From the NCBI RefSeq assembly GCF_037042905.1, contig NC_087246.1, positions 57,164,001 through 57,228,000 on the forward strand: DNA of 64,000 nt, in the 5' to 3' direction. The stretch comes from Lytechinus pictus. Its lineage: Eukaryota. Positions 22,045 to 60,615 of the stretch are shown here, piece by piece; the stretch's first letter is position 1, and every line of letters starts with the position of its first letter. A program made the position numbers and the translations under genes. The notes beneath the pieces were generated by a model that was not told the DNA's origin, did no database searches, and saw only the letters and a list, made by a program, of their open reading frames with translations.

Positions 22045-25000
22045 CTTCGAATGAAAAAAAAAATACATAAACAAGTTAAACTACACGTCAAAACTGAAAA
22101 AAGAACATCAGTAGATTCGAGGTGATAACGAGGTCCCTTTGTTTTCATTTCTAACCCCACGTGGTTTTGAACATGATTACACCAAGAGACTCTGCCAGCA
22201 GATTGATATGAAAGTTACATTCCATGAATTCTATTGCAAAATAGAATAACACTTATATTCATTTTAAGAAAAAAATACAACACGGTTTTTTGGAAAATGT
22301 CTGTTTGGTGCTGATAAGGAACGTCTGACTGATTGGCCGGGATGTCGAGGTTTAGAGCATTGACATCGTCACCCTCATGTTATGATAATAAAAATAAAAG
22401 GGTTCCACCAAAACTTGATCGCATTTTACAGGGCAGATATACAGCTTGGTGTAAAAACCAAAAGTGAATGAAAAATAAGGATTTCATTGAAACCTGTGAC
22501 GTTTGCACACTCTGATTTTAATTTGAAAATGGTAAAAAAAAGGTCCAAGTTCATAAATCACTAACAACGGTTAGAAATATCAAAGAGGTTATTAACGAAA
22601 GAGGTTATTAACAAAAACACTATACAAAATAGTTGAAGTATCTTGAGCTATAAATCATGAATAATATTTGTCAAATATTTTCTACAATGTTTCATCACAG
22701 TCTTGTGGGATTTTTTCAGTTAACGTAAAACACAATATACGATCGAATGAATCTTATTGCCCTTTGCGTGTGTCAAAAAGGTAGAAACTGTGACTGACAA
22801 AGGGTAATGCATCATGAAAAATAGAACAAGTAAAAGAGCAGGTTATCGTCGATTTAATTTTAGGAGTTAGGACGTTTCATGGGCGGCAGTAGACTAACCA
22901 ACGAGTGGGGAGTAGAAGGATACATAGTGCGCATGTTAATCAAGCTCGCGTGCCAGCTGTCATGGGCATGCCGTTGCACATCAATCAGAATACACCGCAC
23001 CTAGAAAACAAACTCACCAACTCCATGAACTCTGGGGTCATATGACAAAGAAAGAAAGGGCAGGGAGGGAGAGAGAGAGGGAAGGGGGTGGGGTAAAAAC
23101 TTGGATGAGCTAAAAGCAATAGCAGCATCAGGGTTGAATAAAAAAATAGTCGACATTCCATCGCAGCGGAGGAGAGATGAAAGCGAGCAGAAGAAGAGAG
23201 GACGCGCGTCCTGATTGGTTGTGTCAAATAGATAGTGGTACTCTCTCCTGGGGCAGGCGCTGTGTGCGTCATGGTGGCTATGAAATAAGCAACCTCCCAG
23301 TCCCGTGCCTTACAGCATGCCGCCTGTCTAGCCAACCTCTCTGCCACGCGACCATTATTTTCATCTTCAGTCATCCTCACACTTCTCCTACTTTTTTTAA
23401 AGTTAAGTTGCGAAGGAAAAGTGCAAATCATCTGACCCCGCCGATGATTCTATTAGAATCTTGAGATACATCCTACAATGTTATGCTGTTGAGTTTATTA
23501 AAAAAGGATTTTGATTTTATTTCTTGTGCCTTCAATATGAAATGGGTATCGATAAATAAATCCTTCGGGAGGAGACCCATCTTTAATTACTCCATCACTA
23601 CAAAAGTGCGAAGCTGTCTGATGTAACCCAGTCATATTTTTTTCAATTAGCTGGTGGCCAGAAGAATGCCAAAGAAATTTCGTAAAGACCGTGTCATAAT
23701 AATAGTTATCACAAATGAAAATATAAGAATCGATTGTTTGCGGTGAAATTTCGTCAACTTTTTTTTTACGTCAACCACCACAACAGAAATCGTCATAGTC
23801 GTGATAGTCAATATTGAGTCCTGTATACATTAAAACGATCGTAGAGAATGGAATTATACATCCACAATATCATTTATTTCGATTTATTTCGCAAATCAAT
23901 TATTATCACGCTTTGATTTCTCGAAAAAGATTTAGGGCGGACAACTTTTCTGTAAGTGCGTTACCCACCCCCACCCCCTCAACATCAATTTGAGCTCTTG
24001 ATTCCATTTTATTTAGAATATTCTGTAACCATGTTCCCCAAATACTCTCCACTATAGGCCTGTATATCATTTATACTGTACCTCCATGATGTTACATGTA
24101 AATAGCCGTTGAAATTACGTTTGTTTGTAGGTGGTGATGGTGGAAGTAGTTCGCTGACGAACAGCTGTTTTCTTGATTGATTGCGAGAAAGATGAGGCCA
24201 GATAGAGGGGGCCTGGAGCAGAACAGACAAGACTGTTTCATTAGCCCAAATATAAAACATCTTCAGCACCATTTTTGTCTCTCTTTAGACCCTTAAGTTC
24301 TTCTTTGGCGATTGCGTAATCAAATGGTATCATGACTGAGGAATTTACAATTTCGGTTGTCCGCTTTGTAATTATTTATTGTTGGTATTTTCTCATTAAA
24401 AGAAATAATATCCTAACGAAAATTCGATCACGATGACAAAATCGGCACATGGACCCATGAAGTTGAGCTATGAAACATTGAATCGCTTTTATTATTTAGC
24501 TTTCATTTAATGTAATTGTTCCGGAGAGGTACTAATGTCACCAGCGTATGTTATTCAAATGCCCTGCCCCCGTTAGTGCATCTCTTTAACAGGATTAGTA
24601 ACAAACATGGCTTATATCACGTATGTACAATGATGTAACCTGTCGCTGGCCTCTATACCCTTCATCATCATTATCATCACCATCCTGTCATATGGCATAG
24701 CAACGAGAGCAAACCAACTTGTCACGCTTGCTCACTGGAAATCAGCCAACCAACTGATGCATGCCGACTTGATAACTGGTGGCTATGACTAGACAACACT
24801 TGTAATGCTTTAGTCATACCATGGGCGTATGATCATACCAACGATTCCGACTCCAAACCGATCAAACGATCGCGTTATCTGGTTTGGATCGGAGTTGGTT
24901 TTGTTGCTGTGACTGTAACACATCAAACCTCCAAAGTCGAAAGAGGAAATTAAAATAAAAAAAATCAGGGGTACGTTGTTGTGCCGATGATCAACTAATT

Positions 25001-28000
25001 TTGAAATGAATTGAGACTTGCTTTGTTGTTGTTGTTGTTATTGATGTATCTTGATTATTTATCATTTTTATGGATATATACAAACCCAATATTCAACATA
25101 TTCTTCTGTTTAATCGAATGAATAAAGATATTAATCAACGTAGCCAAGATCATAAACTCTGTCAAGAAAGTACGATGGTCAAATTAAATCCGATGATGAA
25201 AATATTATAACGAAAACAGAGAGTGCGGAACAGTCTTAGGACCAATACATTTCGGCCATGCCTAACATAATATACCACACCACATTTTTCTTTTGTCGTT
25301 ACACGCTACCATAGATGCATTTTGGCTAGAAACTTGAATGATTAGCTCAGATGCTAGACTCCACCATCACGCCTGTCTTCCACCGATCATCAGTTTGCCT
25401 GACTAGACTCGGAGACAGTGAAATTAGAAGAAATGAGAATCATATATCTACCTTCTCTGCATCTGAATGCTATGACATTTCAATTAGAGTTCACAAATCA
25501 GTTCAGCGAGCAGGAAAATGGGTTTGTCGGATAGATATCTTAACGAAAGAATACGTTATTTAGAAAATATCTATGTAAAAGAAGGATTTAGCAAAAATAT
25601 ATAAAAACTAATAAGTATGCTTACTTTATCTTTAGATAGTAATATTAATAACATTATCAAAATTAATCATATTAATGACAAAACGAAAGTTTAAAGTACT
25701 ATACTTTGTTTAATTTCCATTTTTTTTAAATCAGATTGTGTCAATTAAGTACAGTGTGGACTCAATTTGAACTTTAAATGAAGGTGACGATGAGAGAAGT
25801 CGCAAAGTGCATTCTCTCTTGTTAATGGCACGTGCGGGGGTAATTCATTTGCGTCAAAATAAAAAACTTGTTTTTCATATTTTCATACACATGTAGCCAA
25901 GGTTAAGCGGGGGACAAACGGCAAATTGTATACGCAAGAATGTGTCAAAATTAAACATCCGGCATTCTACTTAATTCTCCCCTCGAACTTCCAAACGTGT
26001 CTATTTTATTAGCAACTGTTACCGAACGAGTCCGCCCGTCCGCAAAACTCATCAACCACACATGTCTAATAAGCACGGCCTTAATGAAACATTTCCGATG
26101 CCTTTCTGGGACTCAACAAAGACCAAGTTGTTGAAAATGGACAGTCAGTCAGAGATGCTGCCCAGAAAAAAAAAAGAAAACGGGTTAGCGGTTTTTAGGT
26201 ATCTTTAAAGGATTGATTGGATGAAATAACAACACGAGCGATGCGGTGGTAGAGTGGTAAAAAGATGACTGTCGATGAGGGCTCGTGCTGAAATATTTGG
26301 GGGTAGACAAGAAGCAGGAGAATCAAGTGGGCCTTCATGTAACAGGCCTCAATCAAGACAAGTTTTTAGCCACCACTGGCGCGCGCCGGTTGTATCCATA
26401 TATGGTCATGCTTGCTCCCGACCCACGTGCCTCTAAAACACACACCATACCTTCACTCTTTCTCTCTTCTCGACTCCCCCTCTTCATTTTTCTTTCTCTT
26501 TCAAGTACTTTCGTTCTCCATCTTCTCCCAACCAAGCAGCAGACGCTCACAAATTGACTGATGCCGAAGTATGACTGCTTTTTATCATCCCCTTCTAAAA
26601 TAGAAAGCCGAAACCGAAAGGATGAAAATAAAAAAGCAAGGACTGTTTGACAGACGCTGATGTACAGTTCATGTCACATTTACTTCGCAGATATCATCTT
26701 TAACATTGCGACGGAAAGACGGTTTTTCATTTCACATTAACAACGTCTTCAAGCTTTCCTTTTATTTTTTTGTGACCATCGACTGTGCAGCGATCTACCA
26801 GTCGCTCTCCCTCACAATGTTTTTAATGTCAGCAGCGGGTATGAAACGGGACACTATTAGAAGATCTAAATCTCTCCTCTTCTTAGTTGATGAACATTCT
26901 AAAAATACTCGATGATATTTATTTGATCCGATTGATAACATTTCTGCGTGACCTTTAAGTGATGAATGCAGATCTTGGCTATTGCATTTGACATCGACTA
27001 ATTGAAAGAAAGCGAGTAATTAAATATGACATCGGTTTAAAGGAGGTGAAAGTTTGCACACCCTGACTGACTTCTACTTTCTTCTTTTCTAAAATATCCG
27101 CATGTTATCATTATTCTTTGCATTTTTCGTGCTAAATTGAAAAAAATATTCCTGTAGAAATTTGTTTAAGGTCAAGATTCGATCGGATGACCTCAAAGTG
27201 GGGGTCACAACTTTGCTGAGCCTCTGCACACAAACAGTGCCCACATGACAAAGATTTACAGGGTCACAAGAACAGAATAAAAACAATCAAGAGACAAACA
27301 ATCTAAAAATGAATGTAACCAGCGTCTTCGTTCAAGAATTCCTTGACATTGACGTAGAAGAGAACAAATGGAAAATAAGTAAGATAAAGAGGGGGGTGTA
27401 GACAGGGGAGGAAAGATAGAAGAGAGAAGAAAGAGAAAGGGAGGGGTAAATCGTTGTCTCTGGTGGATTATTGGTGGTATAACATTTCTATGAAAAATCA
27501 TTAGGGATTGACATCGAGAAGTTTGGGGATCGTGGGTAAACGACAGGGGTACATGGTTACCCCCATCGGACGAAGATCGGCTAATTGGTATAAACTGATC
27601 TGTCTCATCCTATTTGTATTTGAATAACTAAAAGGTCTTATAATCAGATGGAGATTTTAACATATCATTCTCTTCATCGAGAAGGCTCTATTTGTCTTCA
27701 GTAAATCTTAGCCTTTAGAGGAACGTCAAACTTATGATGGGGTCTGGGAATTAAACTTGTATCTGTATGGTGCGGAAAAACTCTTGTCAGAACGTTGTTT
27801 AATGTCCTTTGCCGGGCGTGTGGTCTTTCCCCATCCATTGAGCTTTTAAGAACATTATCGTATCATCACATTTACTATGTTAACAAAAAATTGTTTATCA
27901 CCCATATTTGTTATGTTCTTGGTCAGCATTTTCCACGTTTTGCTGCACAAATCATCACATTGTATTGATTTTATCAATAATTACATGAATGTAATTATAA

Positions 28001-28360
28001 TCCTTAAATCCCTGTCCTACTAACCTCCCGATCCACAACCGATGTTTAAAAAAAAAAGAGACTAAAAATCAAGCGACGCCGTAAACCAAGAAACTTCATA
28101 CAGATTAATCACGGACCGGGCATCCAAACGTCACTCCTCAATTTGTATTTGACGTGTGCCTGATTAGCTTGACACACATGACATTATGACCTTCCAATTT
28201 AGCCCGACTCTTTTCGTATACCGTAGGGGTCACAATGGACTTTCAGTTCCATTCATAATTTTCCTCGTTTTCTCTTCTTTTTACCCTCCTCTTCAACTCA
28301 ATTCGACCTGACGCGCAGCATCACAGGTGGTAGTCAGGTTTTCAGACAGACTTTCATTCA

Positions 28361-28600
28361 GTAGTAGCCTCAGTGGTAGTAAAATGGCTTTTCATTTCGC
28401 TTTTAGTTTATCTCTCCAATTTTTAGCGTAGGCATTCGCGTACCTTAAAGGGGGGGGGGGCAGGTTTTTTTAAGAAGAAAAAAAGAAATCATTAGTAGCC
28501 TCATTAGTACTTTAAGGCTTTCACTTTCATTTCGCTTTTTATTAAATCTCTCAAATTTTCAGCCTAGGCGCTCGCGTACCCGCAAGGGGGGGGGGGGGGA
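28361..28600. repeat. Imperfect tandem duplication of about 130 bp, each copy ending in a poly-G run
   Basis: TAGTAGCCTCA...TTTCATTTCGCTTTT...TAGGC..TCGCGTACC + G-run occurs twice. Confidence 0.6.
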
Positions 28601-31600
28601 GAGTGCCCCCTGACAGAATTTTGATTAACTAAAAAATATTCTTGAAAAGTTTATGTCTCTTTCTGCAATGTTTTCCAGACACGCTATTAAGTGAGATTGT
28701 TGCTCTGTTTTTTTTTATGATTTCATCCAACGTGTCCAACGGATAATATTATTTTCATGCGTCATTTAATGGTTGTTTCAACTATTTTGAAACTAATAAA
28801 CTTGAAGTTTATACGTACCATTACTTTCGTCCCAAATGCTTTTCTGAATAGTGGTTATATGTTACTCCGTTTATACTTCATTTTTTTTTATGTTAAATGA
28901 ATTATGATTAATGGAGTATACAAATAAGAATGAAATACAATTAAGTGAATATTATACTTTTAAACTCTATCGCGATAAGTGTATAGGGCCTAAAATCTCG
29001 ATAAAACAGATTTCTATAATTTTTTAAAAAACTGACCGGAGGTTTGTAGGTGGTCATGCCAAACATAATCATGCTATTAAATAAAATCAAAAGGACCCCA
29101 ACCCCTCTCATCCTCGTATAATTTTCATTTTCTTCTTTTTAAACAAGTTTAGGTATATTTATCTCACCGCGGGAGTTGTGTGTCAGTGGAGGTCGTTAGC
29201 GGCACGCGCGTGTCGGCAGGGCTCACTGTGGTCGCGTGGAGGGGGGAGCGTTACGCGGGATGGCAACTTTCACCAAGTTGACAACTTAAACCTGTTCGAA
29301 TTTTTCAAACGATTATACATGGTTCTTTTAAGGGATTTGGACGTCGGACCTGGATTCGTTACCACGGTTACTCGATGAATACGCTTCAAAATACCACGGA
29401 GCTGCGTTAATAGCTCCATGAATATACTATAAACTTATCACAATAATTGAAGACTTTAGTATGATATGGACACCAATGACACAACTTCGACAGTCTACTT
29501 TTTGTTATTTCCATCCTTTTTTATTTTTATTTATATTCTATTCTGCTATTGTTAAATTTGTATAAAAAAAAGCATATTATTATCATTAATATTATTATCA
29601 TTATTACTATTGTTTTAGATGTTGTTGTTGTTGTTATTATTATTATTATTTCATATTTCCATTTTTTTTTGTGGGCGGGGGGAAGAATTACAACGAATTC
29701 GGGATAAGTGTGTTTGACCCCTAGCGTAATACATGTCTTTATCTCTATACATAACGTAATTACAGCACCCACGCGACTGACAGTTGTCATATGGCGTTAC
29801 CTCCCCTCACCATCTTAATTCAATTCACTATCTTGCTTTATCTAGGATAGTATCTCCCACTACAGGCATTAAAAAGAAATAGGGGCTTACTCCCATAACC
29901 AGGTGGCATTATCTTAATAACGCAACCCGGGGAGGTGGGGCGCAACATCCATTCCTCATCCCTATACGATCAATAGCACCATCTACAAATATTGGAGTAT
30001 AAGGAGTCGTCATAATTTTCTTTTGTTTTAAACTAAACTGCCCCAAAAGAACGATAATATTTTATAGTTTATGTCATTCTCGGTCAAGCATTTATGAAAT
30101 GTCACAGCATGGTCATGCGCAATAGGGGTGGACAAAATGTGGCTCTCGACCCCTCCCCCCGAATAATATTTGAATACTGCATTACTACTGCAAATTTTCT
30201 TAAGGAGAACGAAGGAGCCACGAAGGGGAGTGGGGGTAGACGATAATGGGGAAGATAGATTGAGAGTTAAAAGAAGAGACATTTAATTAAGAAACGTGTA
30301 GCAGTATTTACTTTCTGTTTCTGTTTCTGCCCTCTCAACATGCTCAATATATACGTCACTGACCAAACATGCAGTCCCTTCATGATTCACTCTTTTCATG
30401 GATATAGAGCCAAGAGGATTCATTCGGAGAAGTGAAAGGTAGTGATGACGATTAATATCAAATGAGGTTTGAAAGACTCTCCAAAATTCATGTATCAAAT
30501 TCATACACCGCACCTTGAGGGTGGTAAACTGTTTAGCATTATAGGACAAACGGCAGTTGACAATATCTGAATATGTATGAATGAAATCATAATGTTCGGC
30601 CACTGCTGATAAATCAACAAAGAAAACATGTGTCATTTTTTTCCATAATACTTTATTGGAAGTGTTAGAACAATGACAAAGCCTTGTAGCTTGTATCAAG
30701 AAGCTTTCATGCCTGCTCAGATGTGGTTTCACCCTTTTAAATCTACCTTTTGCCAAAGTGTTGACGAAATGGCATTCCCAGAAGGCTAAGCTTCGTGTAT
30801 CAATACATTTTGGTCTTTAGTTTCAGGAGCTCTGACCCCAATTTGGGGGAGATATTTAAGGTATGAAACCTGCTCTCGTTCATGTACGTCTTCATCCACT
30901 CCCCCCTCCCCTCCCGGAAAAAAAAGAGAGAAAAGCGATGAAAAGGGTGGATACAAAGTGGTAGATGGGGCGTAATGCGGCATTGCATCGGTTAAATACC
31001 GTACGAAAATAGAGCAGAGTAAAGAGTGAGTGGAGAAAGATAGGTCGGGTCGGTTTTCATGAAAGGGGATTTGATAGCTGATGTGGGACAACAAAACAAA
31101 AGGATTCACCGCTACCAGAGTATTTTGACCCCCTTAAAGTGGATCCCCTTTCGGAAAACGTTCAATCCCCCTAGCCATTGCCTCACATGCTGGATATTCC
31201 GTGTGCAACTGCATGTCGCTTGGCACGGGGAACAGTACAATCGACTATATCAGTAGAGAAGAAACAACTAAAGGATCATTATGAGAAGCTTTACTTTATA
31301 GTAAGGATAACGATATTGGATTCTTATACAGCGCTCACTTCTGGTAGATCAGACACCCCTGACTATAGCTCAATATAAAGCGCTTCATCAAGAAAGTGCG
31401 AAACTTCATAACCGTTCGAGTTCGTTATTGACGTAGCCATTTTTAAAATGATAAAATCACAGTTCAACTGGCTGATACAATAAGCAGGTAGGTTGATGAT
31501 AGACCCAACAGGATGGTAAAGCACTGTAAGCACAGGTGTGGCAACGAGAGACACCGTCAAACATGTGAACGACAATTACGAACACGCGACCGTTAGAGGC

Positions 31601-34379
31601 GCCCGCCAAATTTTCTTGGACAAAACACCTTCTTCTTTTCATTTATGCTCAGTCTTTTAAATAGATTTTATTTTATTGGCTTGTCATGTCAAATACATTC
31701 CCATTGCCACAAAAATACATTAAAAGTGTATTTTGTGAGATTAAATTGTAAATAACCAAATATCGATAACGTTTTAAATGATATGTTGTTGTTCGTCCCC
31801 CACCCCCCCCCCCAAAAAAAAAAGTTTTTAGAAAGACTGACTTTGCAACTTTCCTCGAAAGATGCAAAGTCCCCTATAATTTTTCATGATAACAAATGAG
31901 TTTTGAAAATAAAAAAGTACGGTTATAAGAATAATCCATATATTTGCTACATTCTTTCGTTCTATTTTCCCTTCCCCATTTACGTATCTTTCTCTTTTCA
32001 TTTCTCATTTAAAACAATCGTGGATATATTAGTGTCTATCAAAACGAAACTGCAGAGGTGGATGAACAAATAAGATTGCGGGCGAAAGCAAAGCATAAAT
32101 GAAAGCAAATACTGAAATGATGAAATGAAACTGGTTATCAAAAATAAGTAAAACGTTAAATCTACAAAAGAACAGATTTGGGAGATTCATGAAAGTTAGG
32201 AAAAAGACCCAATGAAATTCTTGAAAATGAAAGGAGGGAGAAAACATTGGTAAATCAGGGATATGAATATGGGATTAAAGTAGGGAGTTATAATATATTG
32301 ATTCGATATCAAGATATAGAACTGATGCAAAAGATAGGATGAAGTGCAATACGAACTAAAGAGGCGGAGAAAGGGACAGATACGCAAGCGAACTATAAAG
32401 ACAAGGAAATAGAAATTATAGGAAAAGAAAACTGTATATACTTTAACAGAAAACACAGAGAAGAAAAGTCTGGACGGTAAGGTATTAAAGAAAATAAAAG
32501 GAAAATATACGAACGAAAAAGGGAGATACTGATAGAAGAATGGAAATTAAAAAGGCCAGAAAGAAAGAGAGAAAGAAAAAGAAAGAAGAAAAGAAACAAA
32601 TAGTAAGAACGAGAGAGAGAGAGATGAAGAGAAAGAGAGGGGAGAGGAAGAGGGAGAGACGAATAGAAATGAGGAGCGAGTTAGCACAGTGGTGGAAGAA
32701 GATGATGATGCCCTCGCCAACTTTGCCACGCGACCAAATGCCCAAATATGGTCATAAGCACGGCCACCCGGTTCGGGTAGAGATTGCACAGGAATCTAAC
32801 AGGCCGTTTTTTCTCTCCTGCGATCTACTTACACCTAGTCTCTTTACCAAACCTAACTTATACTCGTTACCGTTAGTTAAAAAGAAAACATAATATTTAC
32901 AGGATAATGTGAGTCGGTTTTTAACAATCAAGAAGCCTTTAAATCGGTCATTGATGATAAAAAACTATCCTGCACCAGCCCATCAAAGTTAAAAAGAAGT
33001 AAATAAACAGAAAGGTCCCATAATAATATATGTTCGAACACTAAACCCCACTAAACCTATAAACTTGAATCTGATAAAATCGGAAAGTAACTATGGATTT
33101 TGACAGTGGAAATGTCGATGTCAAATTATTGATATGGATTTAAAAGATTATGTATAAAACAAATCTTATAGTAAAAGTTCAATTATAGACCAGCAAACCC
33201 CAGCAAAACGAATTATTGATTGAAATGATGTCAATAAAAAAATGCTGGTTTATTTAAGTTAAGCCCAAAGTTATAGTTGGCATGCTTCAGCCCAAATGAG
33301 GAAAGGCACTACAAGAAAAAATATAGAAGAAATTTATATCATTTTATAGGGTAGATTGAAAGTTTAAAGTGTCAGTTCACATTACCAAATGAAAGAATGA
33401 CCCCCTCCCCAACCCCCTCCATACCCCCCTTCTATTGGTCGCGTGAGCCCAGTAGCGTGCCATCCAAACCCAAGACTTCGATAGGAGATTTGATGAGGAA
33501 TTTTAACCAAATCGAAAAGCGAATGGGAGCATACCGCTCCTGCATTTTTACCCGTTTCCCCCTCGGTGGTGAATTCCTTTACGCCCGATCCCAATGAAGG
33601 AATGAAAGGAGAAGAAGGAGGAGGAAGAGGAGAATGAATTATCATGACCATAAGGACAGAGAAAGGAGAGAGAGAGGGGGGGGGGGAGAAGAAGAAGAAG
33701 AAGAAGGGATATTCAACTTGAGAAACAAAAATCGACGTAAACTCCTTTGGGCGCCGAGTGAACGGTTAATCCAAACCTTTCTAGAAAATAAATATTTCGA
33801 GAAGCTTTATGGTTATTATTTTATAGTCTAAACGATGTGTTTATGGTCGAGATGTGCGTTCTTTACAAGACGACATTTTGACGGCCAATCGGCTCAGACT
33901 GGATTTAGTAGCCGTAAGACCATCTGATCGCCTGTTGTGATTTAGAGAGATTACTGGTATTTCATGACTATTTTTTTTTTTTCAAATATCTGATAAACTA
34001 GTCAAATCTTATAAATGGGCACTCAGATGTCCTTATTTTAAACATGTAGTCCTGCTTACTGGACATTTCCATGCAAACGTTTTTTTTTTCAAAAAATAGT
34101 AAGATTTGTAAAACAATGAGCTTGTGTTTGTAAGTTTATCACTTTGAATAAAATTTTGTCAAATTCACTCCCTTCCCGTTATTAATGATTGTACATTGAT
34201 TAATTGTAGGCCCTTTCATAACTTGAAGAATAAGAAAAATAAGAAATTCTATCAAAATGATGCCCAAACTTTATTTCAAACATTCATTAGAATTTTGCAG
34301 AAATTTGAGATATATACGGGTGGGTAAGATAATGTATATAAGATTTATTATGATTACACTTTAACGTTTCAAATGTTTA

Positions 34380-34502: not shown

Positions 34503-34961
34503 GTTAGCTCATATTTTGTCATATTACAAACATAAAGAAACCTTCAATCGAAAATGAAATTAGTAAGTGTTCACTTTAAGATTTGTAACAGTTGTATACA
34601 ATTAAGGAGGGAAAAGATTGAAGAGATGATTTCTTAAAGTTCGTTTATATTGGTGGCCATCTTGCTCATGGAGATGAGGTTGCTATTAACAACGCGGACG
34701 TCATGCTGACAATTGAACTCATCATCATCATCATCCTCGTCATCATAAGACTTGGCTAAGAGCCCAGGCGAATCATTATTATCTGGCCTGTAAACCTCTA
34801 CCACCTTCTACCAGCAACGACCCATATGAGTATCATCTTCGCGCTCTTAATCACTTTGACCGCTATCTATTTTAAAGTTCTTCCAAGAAAGCTCGGCATA
34901 CAGTGGCAATGACTCGCGCTCACAAGAGACTTCAGGGTGCAATGAAACGGGGGTAAACATG

Positions 34962-35169
34962 NNNNNNNNNNNNNNNNNNNNNNNNNNNNNNNNNNNNNNN
35001 NNNNNNNNNNNNNNNNNNNNNNNNNNNNNNNNNNNNNNNNNNNNNNNNNNNNNNNNNNNNNNNNNNNNNNNNNNNNNNNNNNNNNNNNNNNNNNNNNNNN
35101 NNNNNNNNNNNNNNNNNNNNNNNNNNNNNNNNNNNNNNNNNNNNNNNNNNNNNNNNNNNNNNNNNNNNN
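34962..35169. other. Assembly gap (N run) in scratch intron 1
   Basis: Run of N. Confidence 1.
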
Positions 35170-38100: not shown

Positions 38101-38576
38101 GGTATCAAATTAAGAAAATGAATCCGAACTAGGAGGTGAATTTGTTCATTTTAGACGATAATTGAGGGAAACTTTCCAGATCACCTTCCCTAATATTGTC
38201 GATCTCAGATTTTTTTTTCTTCTAAATATAGAAGACGAGATTTTGTTCCATGGAAAAGTACACTTGTCGTTCTGAGACAAATAAGATGAAATTCAATTAG
38301 GCTAAAAGTCATGGTTTTAGCACTGTATATAATTACCACAACATATTTTGAAACTAAGCCGTCGGAATTCTTTTCAAGGAGCAAGAAAGTTCACAAATCC
38401 AGTTTTGTTACATCCCACTTTCCTAGTGAACTTGACATGGGGCACTCCAGAGTATAGGGGTATAAAGTACAGAATCAAAGCGTCATAAACATAACTTGCT
38501 GTCAAAATTGATTTAACAAAAAACTAGTTGTTTTTTATTTTTACTGGCGATGATTAAATAAAAGATGAAAACTTAC

Positions 38577-38676
38577 TTTGGATGGCTGTTTCTGCAGAAG
38601 CGGCAAAGCAGTCCCACATGGCAGCCTTCTCCTTGTTCGGCCGGGAGACACGGCGGACTAGGAAAGAGCGAGGCAT
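38577..38676 (-). CDS. scrt: Scratch-family zinc-finger repressor, coding exon 1 (SNAG domain)
   Basis: ATG at 38676 opens MPRSFLVRRVSRPNKEKAAMWDCFAASAETAIQ (canonical SNAG start MPRSFLV). It ends at a strong donor A|GTAAGT in phase 1, matching the phase-1 acceptor of the exon at 22044. Confidence 0.9.
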
Positions 38677-39176
38677 GATGATGCGGGGTGGATGTTGCTG
38701 CAGTTCTAGTACAGTGTATAAGGAATTGTGCTCTTTCTTCTTACTCAATAACTATGATGCAATGTTTTAAACAACTGAACATATAAGTACATTTAATGAC
38801 AATTTCTTTTTCAAAAGAGTTTTTCTTCTCCTCAGTCTGTCCGTGAGATTGGAATGAAAAATGGAATAAACAATATGTGAGAAGTCATACAACTCGGATA
38901 TTGACGGTAGGGATGATATCGAATGTAAGATGATGACGATTCCTCCTGCTTTAAAAGTGATGCGGGGTCGATGTTGCAGTATGGTGGTGGTCTCCAGTGA
39001 CACACACTGACTCACAATAGCGTTAAGGGTAAAGTAAGATGATTCAACACAATCATAATATCAAAGGTGAAATATAGGTTGACTGGAAAGTTGATGATGA
39101 TGATGATGATGCTGATGATGAAGCGTCGTTTTGGAAGAGGAGGAGGATGAGATGGAGAGATGGGCAACAACCGGCC

Positions 39177-39620
39177 AGACTGGACACCAAGCGATGTTTA
39201 GATCCTATATATACTGCGTATCCACCTTATATATTCATCCCAGCAACAAGTGTTATTATCCGTTTGAACCGACAGTCCAGGCAGGTCCCTGATACCAGTT
39301 CTGGGGTGGGATGGGCCAGCTAAAGCACGCATCAGTGTGGTTGGTGACTGGAATCGCCATCATCGCATCTCCCCCTGTGGAGAACACACCCCATACTGCA
39401 CTACCATGCCTCTCGCGGCTCAGCCAATCAGAATAGCGCGCGTGCCACTCAGTCGGTACAGCCGACCAATCAAAACCCTGTTTAAGGAGCCAACGGCCCG
39501 TGGCAAGTCTTCTATGCACGTTCATTGGTTGCTCCTATCTGTCAAGTAATTTTGACAGGCGGGTATCCTGATGAGTTGAATTGGTTGCCTTGATAAACCA
39601 GTTAAGACGCAGCTCGTGCG
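39177..39620 (-). promoter_or_regulatory. Core and proximal promoter of the scratch gene
   Basis: Minus strand: TATATATAG (39213-39205) about 30 nt upstream of an Inr-like CCAGTCT (A at 39181), and a second TATATAAG at 39233-39226. CCAAT/ATTGG boxes at 39424, 39466, 39524 and 39580; CGCGTGCC at 39439; locally GC-rich; about 500 nt upstream of the SNAG ATG. Confidence 0.65.
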
Positions 39621-40325
39621 TAAAATTAACAATGTCTTGATGTTATCCAGACCGTCTGATGGTCGAACTTGCTTAAAAGTTACACATGATGATTAGGATT
39701 GGTATAGGATAAGGTTTTTTTAGGATAGGTTTTTATTTTAAAAAATAATTAAGATCATGAAGAAGAAAATACATTTTTAATATAAAATCACAAGAATGCA
39801 AGGCCATTTTCAAGAAATTAACTTAGAATTATACGAAATAATTTACGGAATAAACGTTTGTATAACATCTGTAGTTTCATTGAAAATATTGTGGCCATAT
39901 AAAAATGTGCATCGCAAAAGTCCAAATGTAAAATAAAGAGACACAGTTAAGACAAGAAACCCAATGAAATTATATAACATTAGAAGATAGCTTATACGGT
40001 ACGGTGCACTATATTCTATGTAAAATAGATCAAGATTTACCGAAGATTGTATGAGAGAAGATATCATTAAGAAGGGTTTTGGAAAAGGAGACAACGATAC
40101 ACAACTTTTACCCGTTGTCGTAGGACTACCTATACTGCTGTCGGTCAAGTGCCATGACTGACGTTTCTGTACCCCCTTACACTCCCACACCCACTCCCGA
40201 GTCACAAGCACAAAAGATACAATGTTTAGAGAGTGATTTATCCCAGCTGTGTGAGTTTTGTGAGATGAAATAAACTTTGCCAGAGTGTTTCGATAATGAT
40301 ATTGCGAAAAAGGACAACAAAGCGT

Positions 40326-40719
40326 GGTATAATTCGTCCACTCACCATAATGGTCTATTTTCATTTAGTCTAATGCCATTCCGTCCATCAACATTTCGTC
40401 TAACAACAATTTGGTCCAATAACCCTTTGGTCCAATCATCACTTCGTCTAATCACCATTTCGTCTATGGTCATTTCGTCTCATAACCATTTGGTCTAATA
40501 TCCATTTTATTTTCACTCATTTTTGCACAATTAACACTTAGTCGAATTAGACCAAACGGTATATGGACTAAATGACTATTGGACCAACTGGTTATTAGAC
40601 AAAATGGTGAGTGGACAATTGGCAATTAGACCATGTGGATAGTGGACAAACTGATGGTAGACCAAAATAGACGAGTTGGCAATTGGACGAATTGGCATTA
40701 GACGAATTGGAAATAAACC
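40326..40719. mobile_element. Mutator-like MITE, copy 3 (left end eroded), about 1.1 kb upstream of the predicted scratch TSS
   Basis: High similarity to copies 1 and 2; right end GACGAATTGGAAATAAACC. Confidence 0.8.
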
Positions 40720-41075
40720 ACAATGTGTAGAGAGAGTTATGATGCACGGTAGAAAATATACTGCTGTTACGCGTATAGTTTGTAATAGACATAAAAATTA
40801 TATAGAAACACGTTTTAAGTTTTGAAAATCGAAGAAAATTTTGTAAGAAAGAAAATATATTCAAGGGATTTGTATACAAAGATTTACGACAAATTAAAGT
40901 ACTCTGACAGGGAGATACAATACAACTGTGATTTTTGAAGAATGCTGTCACTTTTTTAACGATTTGAAACAACTTTGCAGGATGGAAAGAAGCTTTGGAG
41001 CATTCGTGGGTCATCCTGTGCAAGCCTGTCCTTGTTTTTTAATGCTACTGTATATTGTGTTGTGGTGACTTAACA

Positions 41076-41273
41076 NNNNNNNNNNNNNNNNNNNNNNNNN
41101 NNNNNNNNNNNNNNNNNNNNNNNNNNNNNNNNNNNNNNNNNNNNNNNNNNNNNNNNNNNNNNNNNNNNNNNNNNNNNNNNNNNNNNNNNNNNNNNNNNNN
41201 NNNNNNNNNNNNNNNNNNNNNNNNNNNNNNNNNNNNNNNNNNNNNNNNNNNNNNNNNNNNNNNNNNNNNNNNN
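41076..41273. other. Assembly gap (N run)
   Basis: Run of N. Confidence 1.
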
Positions 41274-44200
41274 GATCGATGTGAAAAGAATTACAGTTAA
41301 TTGATATTTTAGAATACGTTCAGATTGAATCTCGGCCTATTCATCATGTTTATTGGGGCAAAAAAACCTTTGTTAGCTACGTAAGATTTGGTCATTTGGA
41401 ACAGTTAGGTTATAACGGTCAAAGCATGGATTGTTTGCAGAAACCCAGATTGAGGTGTAACGTTTATTTGAATACTAGCACACCAATCATCCGACAAACA
41501 AACAGACGATTTACTTTAGTGTGAAAGTTTAAAATTTAGATATTGATTTTTTTTCTTTTAAATCGTGATATTGTCATTGATTAGTCCTTTCCCTGTGGTA
41601 CGGTAAATCAGGGTAGACCTCGATAGGCTTTCTGTCTTTCCCCACATCCGCCGTTCAGCGGTGATCATTATTCCTTACTATCTGTTTATTAATTCTTATA
41701 CAATATACTTGTCAATATCTGTTCTGTTGTATCAGCATTTTATTTGTATTTATGTATTTTTGTGTAAATTAAAGAGGCGTGAAATAAATGAATCTGATTA
41801 TGTAAGTATTGCTGGTTTGATTATTGTTATGCGGAAAGGTTCGTTGTACAAAGTAGTTTTGTATAACTGACAATGCTACACTATGTAAATGAACGTACAA
41901 ATAAATAGAAATAGATCTAGATGATAAACTTTCTTTTTTAAAAGGACAATGTTGAGGATTAAAGACATTTTAATATGCTTTATTCACTTGCAATAACCGC
42001 TAAATATAAACAAAAGGTTATCTTGCTAAACCCAAAGCCCAGTAATTTTCATGCATTTTTTGTAATATTTCTTTGATAGTACCAGATGATGCATAATTCC
42101 TTTGTATAACACTTGAAACATTGCGCATAAAGCCAATCATTTTGATCGCACAAGAGCATAGAAAACCAGATCAACATCATCAACAGAAAGCATAGTATCG
42201 TCGTGTGGGGGCATACAGGCGTGCGCACTTGACACACGACTGATGTAAATATAGTATCGTTCAAGGAGAAATCCCATCACATATTTTCTTAACATATTTG
42301 TAGATTTAGAAGCAAGGTTACCTTCTTTTATTAAATAAAAAAAAGAAAGAAAGAAATTCCAGCACTGTGGGCATTGTTTGGACAAAACCATGCACGCTTC
42401 TGAATATGAAAAATATGCAATGTATATATGATTAATGTCTGTGGATTTATCATAATAAGACGAGGGACAAAATGAATTAATCCACACAAAGGTACAATTT
42501 CAAGTAATTTATTCATAAATATTGAAACAATTCATAGGTTTCTACAATGTCATCTGAAATAAAAGATATAATCCCAATTAAAATGTCCAGATTTTGTTTA
42601 TTTATTTTTATTTGCCTGAAATGATATTAGCGAGTACTTGATCTAAAATAATGCAATTTGGTCGTCTTGGCTTTGACGAGAATTGTATCATTTTCAATAA
42701 AGATTAACGAAGCGACAAGATATTCCACGAAATTACACAATTTAGATGCCGTTCTCATCCATTTAGTATTAATTTATTATAACCCAGCCATTCAGGAAAC
42801 GTATATGGTGATAACTTTGAAGATAAATTACTAGTAATGAACATTATGCAAACATTGAAATATGATTGCAACACCCTCATCCCCCTCCCCCCAAAAAATA
42901 TACGCTTATCTGTCTCATTCCGAAGTGAGCAATAACGCCATGCAGTCAAATTCCTTTACTACGCTTTTCCTTTTGCGCGTTTGTATCTAAACGTATAAAA
43001 AATTGACTGATTATATATTTAACATTATTTTTATTTCATTTTATTATCAGTTGTCTGTTTGCAAGCGAGCTTAGCGAGTGAGTTTAGCGAAAAATTACAA
43101 CTTTCTGGAGAGAATTATATCACTTTGCACACTAGCACAGTATGGTAATCAAATTAACGGGTGTTGTAGTTATGGGGGTTGCGACAACCTTATGAAAAAT
43201 TAATCTCTATATAGACGTTTGCCTACGAGGGGGAAGGGTTCCTTTGGTGCCCCCACTGACTACTGACCATGCACACTTATTGCACTTGTTAATGAGTCGT
43301 GTCTGAATATAGTGAATGGTTGGTATTTCTAATATAGGCCTACCCATATCTCCATCAATGAAGTGTATGAAGCTCGTACCACCCACGAGATACTTAGTAC
43401 TACAAATGTTTACTTTTGTTGGTTATCTTCGCAATCGTTCTTTCTTATAAATACATACATCATGATACTATGAAGTTATTCTACCTGATTTCCCACAAGA
43501 TAATGCGATGATTCAGATCACCCCAATTCAACACCTTTACCTCAATAGTTCCCTTAACTTCTCTACATTTTGTCTGTTTTTATTTTTTGTTAGGCATGAC
43601 CAGATATATATATAATTGTTTTATATTAACGATATAGTACATTGTCTTTTCTTTGTCATGTGATTATTTGAACCCAAAAATAAATCGCACGAACTATAAA
43701 CATTAATAGAGAAACCTATATGAAAAATAACATTGTAACATGTTTCGGCAAGAATTAATTATTTTTTAGCCGTTGATGGAATCATTCGTTGACCGTAAAG
43801 GAAACTCAAAATGGTCAAGATGAATATTACGTTTTAATCCCTGAAACAGACATCAGAAACGTGCACATATTTCCTCCATTTACAATATATTTTGTTCCGT
43901 ATGTCTTAATTATACATATAAGAAACAATAAAGAGAAAATTATATGTACATTATAATTATTCAAGATAATCATACAAACAAGTTGGGAATGGAGGGGCTG
44001 CTAAAAAGCGGAGCTTGTAGAATGCAGTATGTCTTTATCGGCGTATCGGGACACTGTGAATATCTGTAATGTTCCTTCGAATACGTGGGTCGCAGAAAGT
44101 TTTTGAAATCCTGACGGTAAAATTTACGTTTTTTAAAACCCGTTTATTAAACAAATGTTTGTGGGGCGGGAGTCGAAGCCCCAAACCACCCCAACCCTTG

Positions 44201-45119
44201 TTCCGCGGCCACCGATCATGGGGGGGGGGGGGCCTTTTTATTTGGCAACCAGTTAATTTGACTATTTTTGCCTACATATGCCTATTTATCGCCTATTTCA
44301 TGACTGTATATGCCTGCACCCTCATCACTGCTTTCAACCAATTTTTTCGCAACTGGGATTGACAGTTGTCCTTCTCACATAAAATAATCCGCTGGAGTAG
44401 ATAAACCCGAACATCGTATTCCTGCGGCGTGGCTTGTTGTTCTTACATCGCACCTCCATTCTCCACTCCTATTATTATCATTGCGATGATTTCGGGGATT
44501 AACATGATTTTAATGATAAGAAATGAAGAGGGGAAAGGATAGGTGGACCACCTAGCAAGAAGAAGTAATACAATCAGTTCACATTCAAACAGAAGCTAAT
44601 CATAGAAACGGCTTCTAAATTCAATGTTATCCTGTAATGCATGCATTTCATACGTCAAGTAAATCCCATAATTTCCTCATGGACGATGATAAAATTGAAT
44701 TGAATTGAATTCATGTTTATATCACTTATAATAGAACAGGGGAAGTATCAGGATGACATTGCATACGGTATATAATGATACATGTACAAACAACATGAAT
44801 CGAAATATATAATACGTTTTCATGTTTTTCCATGAGTAAACAGAAAATATCAGCAAATTTAATATCATATGTAGGAACAGAGAGACCCATTTAAAAATTA
44901 TTATGAATATGAATAAGTTGATTTGAATTAAATTTGAGTGAAAATTAAGACGATCGTACCACTAAGCATTTCATCAAGATTAAGGGTCTCTTTATGATCA
45001 AATCTACAAAAGTTGAAACAAATTATATGAAATGTAATTTTTTATCATCCAAATTTCATCCATTTTTTTTTATTTCCAGCTTTTCAAAATTGAAATCAAC
45101 GTGTTGCTGGGATGGACTA

Positions 45120-45355
45120 CACTGCAAAAACTCCGGTGTTGAGTTAACACCAACCCGGAATCTATATATGTCCACACCAGAGAAGTGTTAAACAACACCA
45201 GTTTCGTTTTGGTCTAACACCAGATAGGTGTTTATACAAAACCAAGTATTAAACCAGCATCGGTTTGATTCCGAACTGGTGTTGTTTCATTACTTCTCTG
45301 GTGTGGACATAATATAGATTCCGGGTGTTAAATCAACACCGGAGTTTTTGCAGTG
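45120..45355. mobile_element. CACTG-ended MITE, copy 2 (inverted relative to 6382-6621)
   Basis: Same TIRs and TA flanks; the interior is the reverse complement of copy 1 with scattered differences. Confidence 0.88.
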
Positions 45356-46699
45356 TAGGCACTTTAATAGTGATTGTACATGTAATAAAATGTATTGTAT
45401 AGTTCCAGCGTTGATTTTGTCGGCTGATGGTGTAGTGAAGTAGTAAAGGTGGTTGTAGATTGACATGTCGATTGTTGTAGTGGTGGTGGCAGTGAAAAAT
45501 CCAGCTCTGGATGTACTTCGGAAAACTTTGAAAATGTCTTGAATTCTCCTTTTTTATTCTATAATCATATCAAGGATACATATGAATATTTCCCCTTTCT
45601 TTTCTTTTATGAGTTCTGATCTTGTTTGACACAAGCATGCTGTTACTCGTCGGGTCTTTTTCAGATTATTTAATGATTATCATCTTGAAAAAAATAATGA
45701 GATACACATGACATCAGCTTCTTTTTTTATTTCCTCAGACACAAAGAACGAAGCTCTGACCACACACCCCAAACAGAAACCAGATTTACAACGTCTCTTC
45801 TAAACCACATCGCACCTTCACCGCTATCATTATCATCCTTTTTTGCGACCATTTTTATATATTTTTTTAACTTTCCATAGCTGTGACAAGTTGGCTCTGT
45901 GTTTTGACGCACCGTGAAACGGCTCGTCCCAACTTTCTGGTCCGTTCGTCCAGCTCAGTTTATCGTCCATATTTGGACATTGACCTTCCACGCGCCACGC
46001 GACGGACAAAATCGGCACGCGACCTTCCCCATCTCTTTCCGTTTCTCTCCATCTCTCTCGCTCTCTCTCCTGCTCAATGAAGACCCACTAACAAGACCAG
46101 TAAACCAACAATGAATCCCTTCGTTAATGTTCCATTGATGATATCCGCCCCTGGCAGGCTGATCGAGGGGGGAGGATGGAAGAGGAATTCTAGGAGAGGA
46201 CGACGAGATTCTTGGCATTTTTCTGCAGATGGGGGATGGTGTGGAGGGTGGTGATGATGATGATAATGACCATGGCGTGTGCCGGAATCTGGTGTTTCAC
46301 TCCCGTTATGGAGACATTTCGAGGATACCATCATATCGAAAAAGTGCATCACTTCTTGTGCTGCTAATCATCTGGTTTGTTTCTTTATCTTGCCCCACCC
46401 CATCTCTAACTCCCCTAATAAATGTCTGTCGTTCTGTCTATCTGTCTTTCTGTTCCTCTCCCCTTCCCTCTTTTCATATATTTAGTTCTTAGTTTTTTAA
46501 GTTTGTTTTCTTATTTTTTTGAGTACTGGGCAACCTGTAGACATCTAATGATTTATTTTCTTCTTCAATTTCTATTTCTGTGCTCATAAATAAGTATTCC
46601 ATTCTGATCATCATTTCTTTATTAATTCCCTTGTTTCATTCAATCTCAAATGCCAGTGGATCTAATCCAAATTAAAATATGAAAATGACCATAATAACC

Positions 46700-59200: not shown

Positions 59201-59249
59201 GCTAACACGTATTCTTTTGAATACCCCGCCCTGTAGCGGCGGACCAATC

Positions 59250-60602: not shown

Positions 60603-60615
60603 TTCTTTTCTTATC

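Follow-up and report, generated by a model that had tools for sequence, protein, structure and literature searches.

Does the recurrence of a CpG-rich 9-mer, CACGCGACC, around a single gene of the sea urchin Lytechinus pictus reflect a regulatory code, and if so, which factor would read it? The gene at this locus is ScratchX, a member of the Snail superfamily that is encoded on the minus strand of the window, that is, of the whole 64-kb stretch of DNA that was analyzed. Its exons, and the two assembly gaps in the region, lie as follows:

38575 to 39192, minus strand: ScratchX exon 1, comprising 5' UTR and SNAG-domain coding sequence with the ATG at 38676, placed by tblastn with orthologues
21245 to 22042, minus strand: ScratchX exon 2, a 100% match to the L. 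pictus protein P0001
20613 to 20882, minus strand: coding part of ScratchX exon 3 (zinc fingers 3-5), placed with orthologue proteins
34962 to 35169, no strand: assembly gap in intron 1, with flanks collinear in L. variegatus and there about 147 bases apart
41076 to 41273, no strand: assembly gap in upstream intergenic DNA, with flanks collinear in L. variegatus and there about 24 bases apart

The coding part of exon 1, with the SNAG domain, corresponds to 38676-38575 and the 5' UTR extends to at least 39192; a spliced RNA-derived contig (run X1) spans 38575-39192 with 0 differences and ends at 39192, and the 3' UTR runs on from exon 3 to lower coordinates. Because the gaps fall within intron 1 and intergenic DNA, no reading frame crosses either of them, and the copy counts for the window cover its letters outside these two intervals. 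The RNA-derived contig uses the canonical SNAG exon and not the first exon of the NCBI model (23374-23312), which reads the motif copy at 23345 as Gly-Arg-Val. Coding constraint on that copy was considered and rejected, as the frame is not conserved: L. variegatus carries a 2-base indel, and the S. purpuratus sequence has indels and lacks the ATG. The public gene model can thus be corrected, its first exon being a non-conserved intronic block that holds one class-C site. A search for structured RNA found no Rfam family across the whole window.

Since the exons were mapped with orthologue proteins and the RNA-derived contig, the layout proposed in the first-pass annotation, with five copies in intron 1 and one upstream, is correct. 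A letter search of the window recovered the six exact copies of CACGCGACC with the coordinates and strands originally claimed (23345+, 29230-, 31583+, 32727+, 33437- and 46016+), together with the 13-mer TGCCACGCGACCA that is common to 23342 and 32724 and the near-matches CACGCGACT at 29770 and CACGCGACG at 45996. The accompanying estimate that chance would supply fewer than 0.1 copy also holds, given a mean of 0.04 and a maximum of 1 in 100 dinucleotide-preserving shuffles of the window and a genome total of 1,012 copies in 811.7 Mb, which corresponds to 0.080 expected per 64 kb. The genome-wide count and shuffled background that had been proposed as a check therefore put the density of CACGCGACC 75 times lower genome-wide than in the window (Poisson P = 3e-10). 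Genome-wide, the word is not over-represented, its reversed control having 1,729 copies; the 8-mer CACGCGAC has 3,723 copies in the genome. By word length, the local excess is 75- to 212-fold for the 9-mer, 46-fold for the 8-mer CACGCGAC (8 observed in the 38-kb locus versus 0.17 expected) and 3.3-fold for the class-C hexamer CACGCG (13 observed versus 4.0 expected). The six-copy set is thus real but only the tip of a larger one, namely 13 class-C sites, including one near the promoter, that span 22947-46021 (about 23 kb) and of which the CACGCGACC copies would be the strongest members. Class-B sites at the locus number three. The first 3' flanking base is A or C at 13 of 13 class-C sites. The hexamer is followed by AC at eight of them, versus 4.4% genome-wide, and by CC at one; ACC follows at six, versus 1.2% genome-wide, a 38-fold difference (P = 5e-9), and four of the six 9-mers continue with A as the tenth base. 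Another word, GAGCGCGAA, the second commonest with two CpGs, was set aside: none of its copies falls within the ScratchX regulatory blocks, exon 3 holds one of them, and three have common flanks that resemble repeat ends.

From the distal upstream end toward exon 2, the class-C sites and the elements beside them are:

46016 to 46024, plus strand: CACGCGACC in a distal upstream module, about 6.8 kb upstream of the transcript 5' end
45996 to 46003, plus strand: 8-mer CACGCGAC (the near-match CACGCGACG), 20 bp from the 46016 copy
45989 to 45994, plus strand: third class-C hexamer of the upstream trio, present in L. variegatus and absent in S. purpuratus
45967 to 45976, no strand: CArG-like box CCAAATATGG, 18 bp from the nearest class-C site
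39439 to 39444, minus strand: promoter-proximal class-C site GGCACGCGCG, about 250 bp upstream of the mapped 5' end
33437 to 33445, minus strand: CACGCGACC in intron 1, an exact letter match, with site turnover
32742 to 32751, no strand: CArG box CCATATTTGG, adjoining the 32727 copy
32727 to 32735, plus strand: CACGCGACC in intron 1, an exact letter match, with the deepest conservation
31583 to 31591, plus strand: CACGCGACC in intron 1, Lytechinus-only, exact in L. variegatus
29770 to 29777, plus strand: 8-mer CACGCGAC (the near-match CACGCGACT) in intron 1, identical in S. purpuratus
29230 to 29238, minus strand: CACGCGACC, then ACCACA, in intron 1, exact in L. variegatus and S. purpuratus
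29203 to 29212, no strand: palindromic double class-C site CACGCGCGTG, 20 bp from the 29230 copy
23345 to 23353, plus strand: CACGCGACC in intron 1, an exact letter match, within the alternative first exon of the NCBI model
22947 to 22952, minus strand: class-C site GGCACGCGAG, about 0.9 kb upstream of exon 2

Alignment of the orthologous loci, a second check that had been proposed, shows that the sites are conserved in related species. Neither of the two sequence-based outcomes named in the first-pass annotation as refuting, a similar density genome-wide or a lack of conservation, was thus observed. The 9-mer occurs five times in L. variegatus, five times in S. purpuratus and twice in Diadema, in similar order and orientation. 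Only 28.5% of the non-coding DNA can be aligned with S. purpuratus, yet 12 of the 13 class-C hexamers lie in these alignable blocks. Ten of the 13 are identical in S. purpuratus. The corresponding share is 9.3% for 6-mers overall and 25% for the other xCGCGy words (Fisher P = 0.002). Three of the sites (32727, 29770 and 22947) are retained in Diadema. When all non-low-complexity words were ranked without bias, CACGCGAC had the most conserved occurrences of any 8-mer, tied with an AT-rich word (P roughly 6e-4 after correction for all 8-mers), CCACGCGAC led the 9-mers, and GGCACGCG was conserved at 4/4 occurrences.

The individual sites differ in depth of conservation. The 32727 copy and its flanks are identical in L. 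variegatus, S. purpuratus and Diadema setosum, and the adjoining CArG box is unchanged in S. purpuratus and Diadema, its offset from the copy being 19 bp in 4/4 urchins. The 22947 site directly follows TGACAGCTG, a Meis-like word plus E-box, in an element with 18 bases identical in 4/4 urchins including Diadema; at 29770, Diadema has CACGCGAC with the same left flank (AATTAC..ACC). The 29203 double site and the 39439 hexamer, the latter flanked by two inverted CCAAT boxes, are unchanged in L. variegatus and S. purpuratus. The 46016 copy is exact in the same two species within a 300-bp block of 77% identity, where the neighboring 45996 site keeps CACGCG in S. purpuratus with CC in place of AC and the CArG-like box becomes CCATATATGG, which still satisfies CC(A/T)6GG. 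At 23345, CACGCGAC is retained across species, with a different ninth base in each: C (L. pictus), T (L. variegatus) and A (S. purpuratus). The region around 31583 cannot be aligned with S. purpuratus. At 33437, the copy has decayed to CAAGTGACC in S. purpuratus, which carries an intact copy about 14 bp away at a place where L. pictus has the decayed CACGCTACT. Because a rare word is both clustered and conserved in other urchins, the candidate sites are very probably real. With local motif excess and evolutionary maintenance both observed, they form a homotypic cluster. As judged from the alignments, the class-C sites are under purifying selection, including one compensatory turnover in the 33437 block. 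The case illustrates compensatory site turnover and single-site conservation in distantly related urchins, which may extend as a trace to a sea cucumber. Su(H) sites (YGTGRGAA) number three at the locus, and none of them is conserved in S. purpuratus.

The identity of the factor is suggested by the hexamer and its flank. The assignment of CACGCG as a class-C site agrees with usage in the urchin literature, where the HesC consensus is given as 'CACGTG or CACGCG' (PMC5859501 Table S9). For Hairy, the published consensus reads ggCACGCG(A/C)C, and achaete carries GGCACGCGAC (PMC449821); CACGCGAC, present at 8/13 class-C sites, fits this published optimum. The 5' GG of the consensus is found at 4/13 sites (46016, 39439, 29203 and 22947), all four of them conserved, and the sites without it mostly have C at position -1. 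The initial view that ACC(A) is not the usual HES flank needs to be divided: AC is the usual Hairy flank, but no HES consensus in the literature accounts for the C at base nine or the common A at base ten. The five Hairy-orange loci of the L. pictus genome contain nine copies of CACGCGAC in 200 kb versus 0.9 expected. The full 9-mer shows no such excess at the HES gene loci, where it makes up 1 of 55 class-C sites, and the ACC flank may therefore indicate a different or additional factor. WRPW genes of L. pictus include hes (P0134) and two others on C14. In L. pictus hes, the Hairy/E(spl) orthologue, the 8-mer lies 448 bp upstream of the ATG and again 1.84 kb downstream; the corresponding distances in Diadema antillarum hes are 529 bp and 1.56 kb, and the strand agrees with that in Lytechinus. 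This placement is the pattern expected of HES autoregulation and would be supportive of a HES identity for the motif.

Several explanations other than HES binding have to be weighed. A recurrent word could be carried by a dispersed repeat or transposon family, and elsewhere the genome does hold the word in repeats: a 44-bp dispersed element, present about 18 times, contains two CACGCGAC, and a C9 minisatellite has eight copies of the 9-mer. Six other close pairs of the 8-mer also occur in the genome. The flanks of the ScratchX copies, however, are mutually unrelated and unique genome-wide, and the copies are positionally orthologous between urchin species that diverged about 50 Myr ago. Motif-masked flanks gave only short chance or low-complexity matches, in line with the first impression that no repeat family is involved, and a genome search with 31400-33650 found elsewhere only the purine-rich stretch 32486-32679, which is clear of the motif copies. 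Repeat membership, with neither similarity beyond CACGCGACC nor multi-copy flanks to support it, was rejected and strikes us as extremely improbable. A more serious concern is that no dedicated factor exists, and that CACGCGACC was selected post hoc within CpG-rich regulatory blocks that are conserved for other reasons. The motif was indeed picked after the window, one of a great many scanned, had been read; conservation extends over the whole of each block, with a footprint that has no sharp centre on the motif, so that part of the motif conservation is block conservation; and other CGCG words are likewise more conserved than average (45% versus 9%). Yet the excess over genome density (P about 1e-10), the lead of the motif in the unbiased count, its conservation above CpG-matched words, the turnover that leaves one intact copy per species and the independent presence of the same 8-mer at hes in two lineages all argue for a factor, and we consider its absence highly improbable. 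Chance origin of the cluster is ruled out by shuffles, genome density and conservation. General CpG richness is ruled out as well, with other CGCG words and shuffles as controls: other xCGCGy words are less conserved, and CACGCGAC is the top CGCG-containing 8-mer in 3/4 species and tied for the top in S. purpuratus.

If a factor does bind conserved functional sites, it could be a bHLH-PAS heterodimer rather than a HES protein. The core of the AhR/ARNT xenobiotic response element (XRE) is TNGCGTG, its extended 3' flank is (A/C)(G/C)A, and HIF-type sites read RCGTG. The fit to the XRE noted in the first-pass annotation stands for the core, since the reverse complement GTCGCGTG has TNGCGTG and GCGTG at every copy, and the A or C that invariably follows CACGCG also suits the T/G position of the extended XRE. 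This core does not discriminate, because any class-C site followed by A satisfies it. The fit does not extend further: the extended flank is fully matched by 0/6 copies, and the position that is free in the XRE is G at 6/6 9-mers, the sole non-G variant in the window being CACGCTACC at 25302, and is unchanged at all retained orthologous sites. The extra G of GGTCGCGTG is accounted for by the Hairy consensus and not by the XRE, and the same 8-mer stands at matching hes positions in two lineages. We regard a bHLH-PAS factor as improbable; the locus-wide homotypic code first envisaged for a bHLH-O or bHLH-PAS factor is thus upheld as a one-motif set, to which bHLH-PAS fits less well than bHLH-O. 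Specificity could also reside in CGCGACC(A), as bound by a GCGACC-binding zinc-finger protein, a Myc/Max/Mnt-type protein on the non-canonical CACGCG E-box or a HES partner at ACC(A). The 38-fold preference for ACC over genomic CACGCG is more than the published Hairy consensus accounts for, the hexamer varies in its 5' flank, A comes next in four of six copies, and the HES gene loci are enriched for CACGCGAC and not for the full 9-mer. Against this, no motif position is less conserved across species than the ninth base, as seen at 23345, where CACGCGAC is kept, and the unbiased ranking puts CCACGCGAC and CACGCGAC above CACGCGACC. A long zinc-finger site is unsupported because the bases past ACCA differ among the copies, and overall we judge such a factor unlikely. 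It is unlikely, too, that CACGCGACC(A) would be the signature of one echinoid HES paralogue or HES-plus-partner complex that marks a small regulon, with a locus-wide 'one repressor, every enhancer' silencing code in which site number is selected through turnover; if it were, the CACGCGACCAAT minisatellite on C9 could be a further member of this extended-word regulon.

On balance, we consider it probable that ScratchX carries a conserved homotypic cluster of candidate HES/Hairy repressor sites that gates several of its enhancers, where we infer the identity of the factor, the repression and the link to Notch from sequence. Candidate sites are distributed over the core promoter, at least six conserved intron 1 blocks and one distal upstream block. 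We propose that a WRPW-type bHLH-Orange repressor dimer (Hes/Hairy or HesC, possibly Hey) would occupy the class-C sites and recruit Groucho-type co-repressors, such that every candidate enhancer and the promoter would have its own repressor site beside candidate activator sites (the E-box/Meis word, CArG boxes and CCAAT boxes). The locus would then be silent in all territories with HES protein and released from silencing in those that lack it, such as Delta/Notch-dependent mesoderm. Published work places ScratchX in the mesoderm/myogenic network, below Delta/Notch and FoxY (PMC4549668); because of this placement, the initial framing of the locus as that of a neural gene is not established. 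ScratchX is a node of the urchin mesoderm/myogenic network with undissected cis-regulation, and the cluster yields a wiring prediction, namely that ScratchX is a direct target of a HES-family repressor, reached through 13 mapped sites that fall into about eight conserved blocks. The cluster also provides mutagenesis targets at base level in L. pictus, a species employed for stable genetics.

Known Hairy class-C sites include the h/E-1 site of Drosophila achaete, and Hairy targets include stg, prd and egh (PMC449821). The ScratchX sites resemble this C-box in that CACGCG plus AC gives CACGCGAC, identical to the achaete site, and in that the candidate site at 22947 adjoins an activator E-box. 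They differ in that the 5' GG is mostly missing and an extra 3' C, often followed by A, is conserved, and in that 13 candidate sites are spread over about 23 kb instead of there being just one or a few. The HesC modules of urchins, with sites given as CACGTG or CACGCG (Ochiai 2008; Smith & Davidson 2008, as cited in PMC5859501 Table S9), share with ScratchX the clade, the hexamer and the proposed logic, in which a broadly expressed repressor silences lineage genes outside their territory. Those HesC sites were defined at skeletogenic and delta genes, and ScratchX is not known as a target; ScratchX also differs in its preference for class C over class B (13 versus 3) and in its constrained flank. 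The AhR/ARNT XRE has its core inside the reverse complement of every ScratchX copy, with the extended flank unmatched. Vertebrate Hes1 undergoes negative autoregulation through its own binding sites, and in both Lytechinus and Diadema the urchin hes gene likewise has one CACGCGAC in an intron and another about 0.5 kb upstream of the ATG, a parallel that bears by analogy on the identity of the motif and not on the ScratchX cluster itself. Homotypic clusters of transcription-factor binding sites are a general concept in developmental enhancers, and ScratchX is alike in having one motif in excess at a developmental regulator, conserved with turnover, whereas its sites are spread locus-wide over several separate conserved blocks and not packed into one enhancer. 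We conclude that the locus presents no new type of mechanism but an established form of gene control that was previously undescribed for ScratchX.

An exact search of the window finds the CpG-rich 9-mer CACGCGACC six times around ScratchX, a minus-strand gene of the Snail superfamily, in each of the places claimed by the first-pass annotation. The 13-base identity TGCCACGCGACCA between 23342 and 32724 and the near-matches at 29770 and 45996 are likewise real. The copies are nested within a larger set of class-C sites, that is, CACGCG hexamers of the Hairy/HES type, and within the 8-mer CACGCGAC.

Copies of the 9-mer and other class-C sites in the window, with their state in related urchins
22947: class-C site GGCACGCGAG
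23345, plus strand: 9-mer; CACGCGAC kept, ninth base variable (L. pictus C, L. variegatus T, S. purpuratus A)
29203-29212: palindromic double site CACGCGCGTG
29230, minus strand: 9-mer; exact in S. purpuratus
29770: one-mismatch match CACGCGACT; exact in S. purpuratus
31583, plus strand: 9-mer; Lytechinus only
32727, plus strand: 9-mer; exact in S. purpuratus
33437, minus strand: 9-mer
39439: GGCACGCGCG, with an inverted CCAAT box on either side; the mapped 5' end lies ~250 bp downstream
45996: one-mismatch match CACGCGACG
46016, plus strand: 9-mer; exact in S. purpuratus
45989/45996/46016: class-C trio

In 100 dinucleotide-preserving shuffles of the window, the 9-mer occurred a mean of 0.04 times and at most once, and with one mismatch allowed the window holds 14 matches where 2.2 are expected. 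The first-pass annotation had proposed counting the word genome-wide; this gives 1,012 copies in 811.7 Mb, fewer than the 1,729 of the reversed control, and CACGCGACC is therefore a rare word without genome-wide enrichment. With its average genomic density as background, 0.08 copies are predicted per 64 kb, so that the six seen represent a 75-fold excess (Poisson P = 3e-10). The claim that the flanks are unrelated and form no repeat family also held: once the motif is masked, the 300-base surroundings share only matches of 10-24 bases, due to chance or low complexity, and the segment with three copies (31400-33650) matches the rest of the genome only in a purine-rich stretch (32486-32679) clear of them. 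No Rfam family was found in the whole window. The sites are thus present, in excess and unique.

The minus-strand zinc-finger exons match the L. pictus protein model P0001, annotated 'SNAI2-like', at 100%, and its Paracentrotus orthologue is named ScratchX/Snai2. Orthologue proteins place the exons as follows.

38676-38575, minus strand: SNAG-domain exon
22042-21245, minus strand: exon 2
20882-20613, minus strand: exon 3

A 3.6-kb RNA-derived contig from a public run covers 38575-39192 without difference and runs on into the downstream exons; therefore, the canonical ScratchX transcript is expressed. The contig puts its 5' end near 39.2 kb, an approximate position because contigs cannot fix the exact start. 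Given this exon placement, intron 1 contains five copies of CACGCGACC, and the other one lies ~6.8 kb upstream of the 5' end of the transcript, in agreement with the layout first proposed. The public model P0001 instead begins in a 63-base intronic exon (23374-23312, minus strand), where the 23345 copy is read as Gly-Arg-Val. A conserved coding exon is ruled out here, given that L. variegatus has a 2-base indel that disrupts the frame and S. purpuratus lacks the ATG, and the segment is therefore a conserved non-coding block. The start of P0001 is probably wrong or that of a minor isoform, since the RNA-derived contig has the SNAG exon instead. Two assembly gaps, in intron 1 (34962-35169) and in the intergenic DNA upstream (41076-41273), are crossed by no reading frame, and by comparison of coordinates their flanks are collinear in L. 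variegatus, ~147 and ~24 bases apart, respectively. A gap may hide an extra copy of the motif, and one copy would leave the result unchanged.

The enrichment extends to all three nested site sets in the 38-kb locus (window 10613-48676). The 84,581 genomic copies of CACGCG predict 4.0 for this locus, which contains 13; for CACGCGAC, 3,723 genomic copies predict 0.17, and eight are present. The six 9-mers lie here too. The rest of the window (41 kb) adds only five CACGCG, and class B (CACGTG) occurs only three times in the locus. The hexamer is followed by ACC at 6 of the 13 sites versus 1.2% genome-wide (P = 5e-9), which indicates that the flank is a real feature rather than a by-product of hexamer enrichment.

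Repeats carrying these or other recurrent words were also seen. A degenerate minisatellite elsewhere in the L. pictus genome (G000:C9:1663360-1664048, locus L026; units of ~30-37 bp) contains CACGCGACC eight times, in most cases as CACGCGACCAAT with a TATTTCC word after it. A dispersed 44-bp element of about 18 copies (for example, G000:C1:23230182-23230225) has CACGCGAC at both start and end; it is part of the genomic CACGCGAC count and unrelated to the ScratchX sites. Within the window, the most frequent CpG 9-mers are accounted for by a satellite-like, internally inverted repeat of 16-base period at 40200-40800, with words such as CATTTCGTCTAA, which is high-copy, with very high depth and many strand-switching joints in sequencing runs. 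Copies of GAGCGCGAA(GC) at 3361, 12584, 12797 and 34838, three with related left flanks (..ATG[TC] or ..AATAA), are probably the ends of a dispersed repeat and lie outside the conserved ScratchX blocks. Two long open frames of 484 and 1,147+ residues (59148-63999, plus strand), running off the window end, look like a retrotransposon-type element.

Lytechinus and Strongylocentrotus diverged ~50 Myr ago, and only 28.5% of the non-coding locus is alignable between L. pictus and S. purpuratus, at 79% identity. Twelve of the 13 CACGCG nevertheless fall within aligned blocks and 10 are identical; the identical share is 9.3% for 6-mers in general and 25% for the remaining xCGCGy words (Fisher P = 0.002). 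The 9-mer occurs five times at the orthologous locus in L. variegatus, five times in S. purpuratus and twice in Diadema setosum, in similar order and orientation. Diadema retains the 9-mer at 32727 together with its flanks, the 8-mer at 29770 together with the flank on its left, and an identical stretch of 18 bases at 22947. At 33437, L. pictus has CACGCTACT then CACGCGACC and S. purpuratus has CACGCGACC then CAAGTGACC; exactly one copy is intact in each species, ~14 bp apart, so the block shows compensatory turnover. To remove the post hoc choice of motif, all words not of low complexity were ranked by how many of their occurrences are conserved in S. purpuratus. Among 8-mers, CACGCGAC (5/8 conserved; P = 6e-4 when all 8-mers are roughly corrected for) shared first place with an AT-rich word, and CCACGCGAC came top among 9-mers (4/5), while GGCACGCG was conserved at 4/4. 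The other top recurrent conserved word of the locus is ATTTTGAC (5/8), often extended to ATTTTGACAG with a TGACAG core. Conservation does not peak sharply at the motif, since the blocks around it are conserved as well. Judged from these alignments, the ScratchX sites are conserved, which was one of the checks proposed by the first-pass annotation, and lie within conserved non-coding elements. A scratch-like locus of the sea cucumber Apostichopus japonicus (L029:4771-4900) has three class-C sites, TGACAGCCTGCACGCG and an identical 12-mer GACCATATTTGG within 110 bp, ~5 kb upstream of a zinc-finger exon; single matches are weak (E 0.4-1.4), and the cluster may be a remnant of the ScratchX module.

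The factor had been proposed to be a bHLH-O or bHLH-PAS protein, with a flank unusual for HES. The Hairy consensus, ggCACGCG(A/C)C, and the achaete site GGCACGCGAC (Bianchi-Frias et al., PMC449821) show that eight of the nine bases of CACGCGACC are the Hairy optimum, so that only the ninth is unusual, and the HesC consensus in the sea urchin literature is 'CACGTG or CACGCG' (PMC5859501 Table S9). The bHLH-PAS element (XRE, TNGCGTG) fits less well: its core is matched, but its extended 3' flank is found at 0/6 copies, its free position is G in all six versus one non-G variant in the window, and it does not account for the extra G of GGTCGCGTG. No HES consensus, for its part, accounts for C as the ninth base, for the A often found as the tenth, or for the weak 5' GG, and it is therefore possible that a partner or a different factor reads CGCGACC.

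The HES reading also finds parallels at the Hairy-orange genes, of which L. pictus has five (three with a WRPW end, one YRPW or Hey, one with neither tail). The 200 kb around them hold 55 CACGCG (21 expected) and nine CACGCGAC (0.9 expected), with only one full 9-mer. Five of the 8-mers lie near the Hairy/E(spl) orthologue hes (G000:C14:12672393-12676367), including one 448 bp upstream of the ATG and one 1.84 kb downstream. In Diadema antillarum hes (L030:9472-11567), the upstream copy of CACGCGAC is at 529 bp and the downstream copy at 1.56 kb, with the strand unchanged, in DNA no longer alignable. The copies in both species are candidate autoregulatory sites, a pattern that HES autoregulation would predict.

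ScratchX belongs to the myogenic/coelomic-pouch network of urchins, in which it is activated downstream of Delta/Notch via FoxY and FoxL1 (PMC4549668); it is expressed in juvenile muscle (PMC12588293), and its expression is lost in a direct-developing species (PMC4778923). Candidate activator sites adjoin class-C sites within the same conserved blocks; the list below also gives the third CArG-type box, at 26396.

~22940-22995, minus strand: TGATTGATG, then TGACAGCTG, then GGCACGCGAGCT
26396-26405: CArG-type box, CC(A/T)6GG
32742-32751: CArG-type box
45967-45976: CArG-type box

The first of these, a block of ~60 bases shortly before exon 2, differs little between Lytechinus and Diadema. In it TGACAGCTG, where a Meis-like word and an E-box overlap, directly adjoins the 22947 site, with TGATTGATG near, all kept to Diadema, and the block reads as a putative Pbx/Meis/E-box/class-C composite. 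All three CArG boxes are still CArG in S. purpuratus. Those at 45967 and 32742 lie 18-19 bp from class-C sites, and both the sequence and the offset of the 32742 box are unchanged across the four urchins. The boxes would fit a muscle-lineage enhancer of the SRF/myocardin type, but three are no more than chance would give (4.3 expected). The 39439 site, in turn, has CCAAT boxes on both sides.

In the most economical model, each control element of ScratchX would be provided with a separate docking site for HES. By recruiting Groucho, a HES protein would silence the locus in every place where it occurs, and the activators would be effective only where it is absent. Of the locus-wide code for one factor originally proposed, the excess and conservation stand, while the identity of the factor, its repressive action and the link to Notch are what we infer from the motif and its context. 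As read from the DNA, the ScratchX sites form a homotypic cluster of putative Hairy/HES-type sites, which, though not previously described at ScratchX, is a known regulatory architecture.
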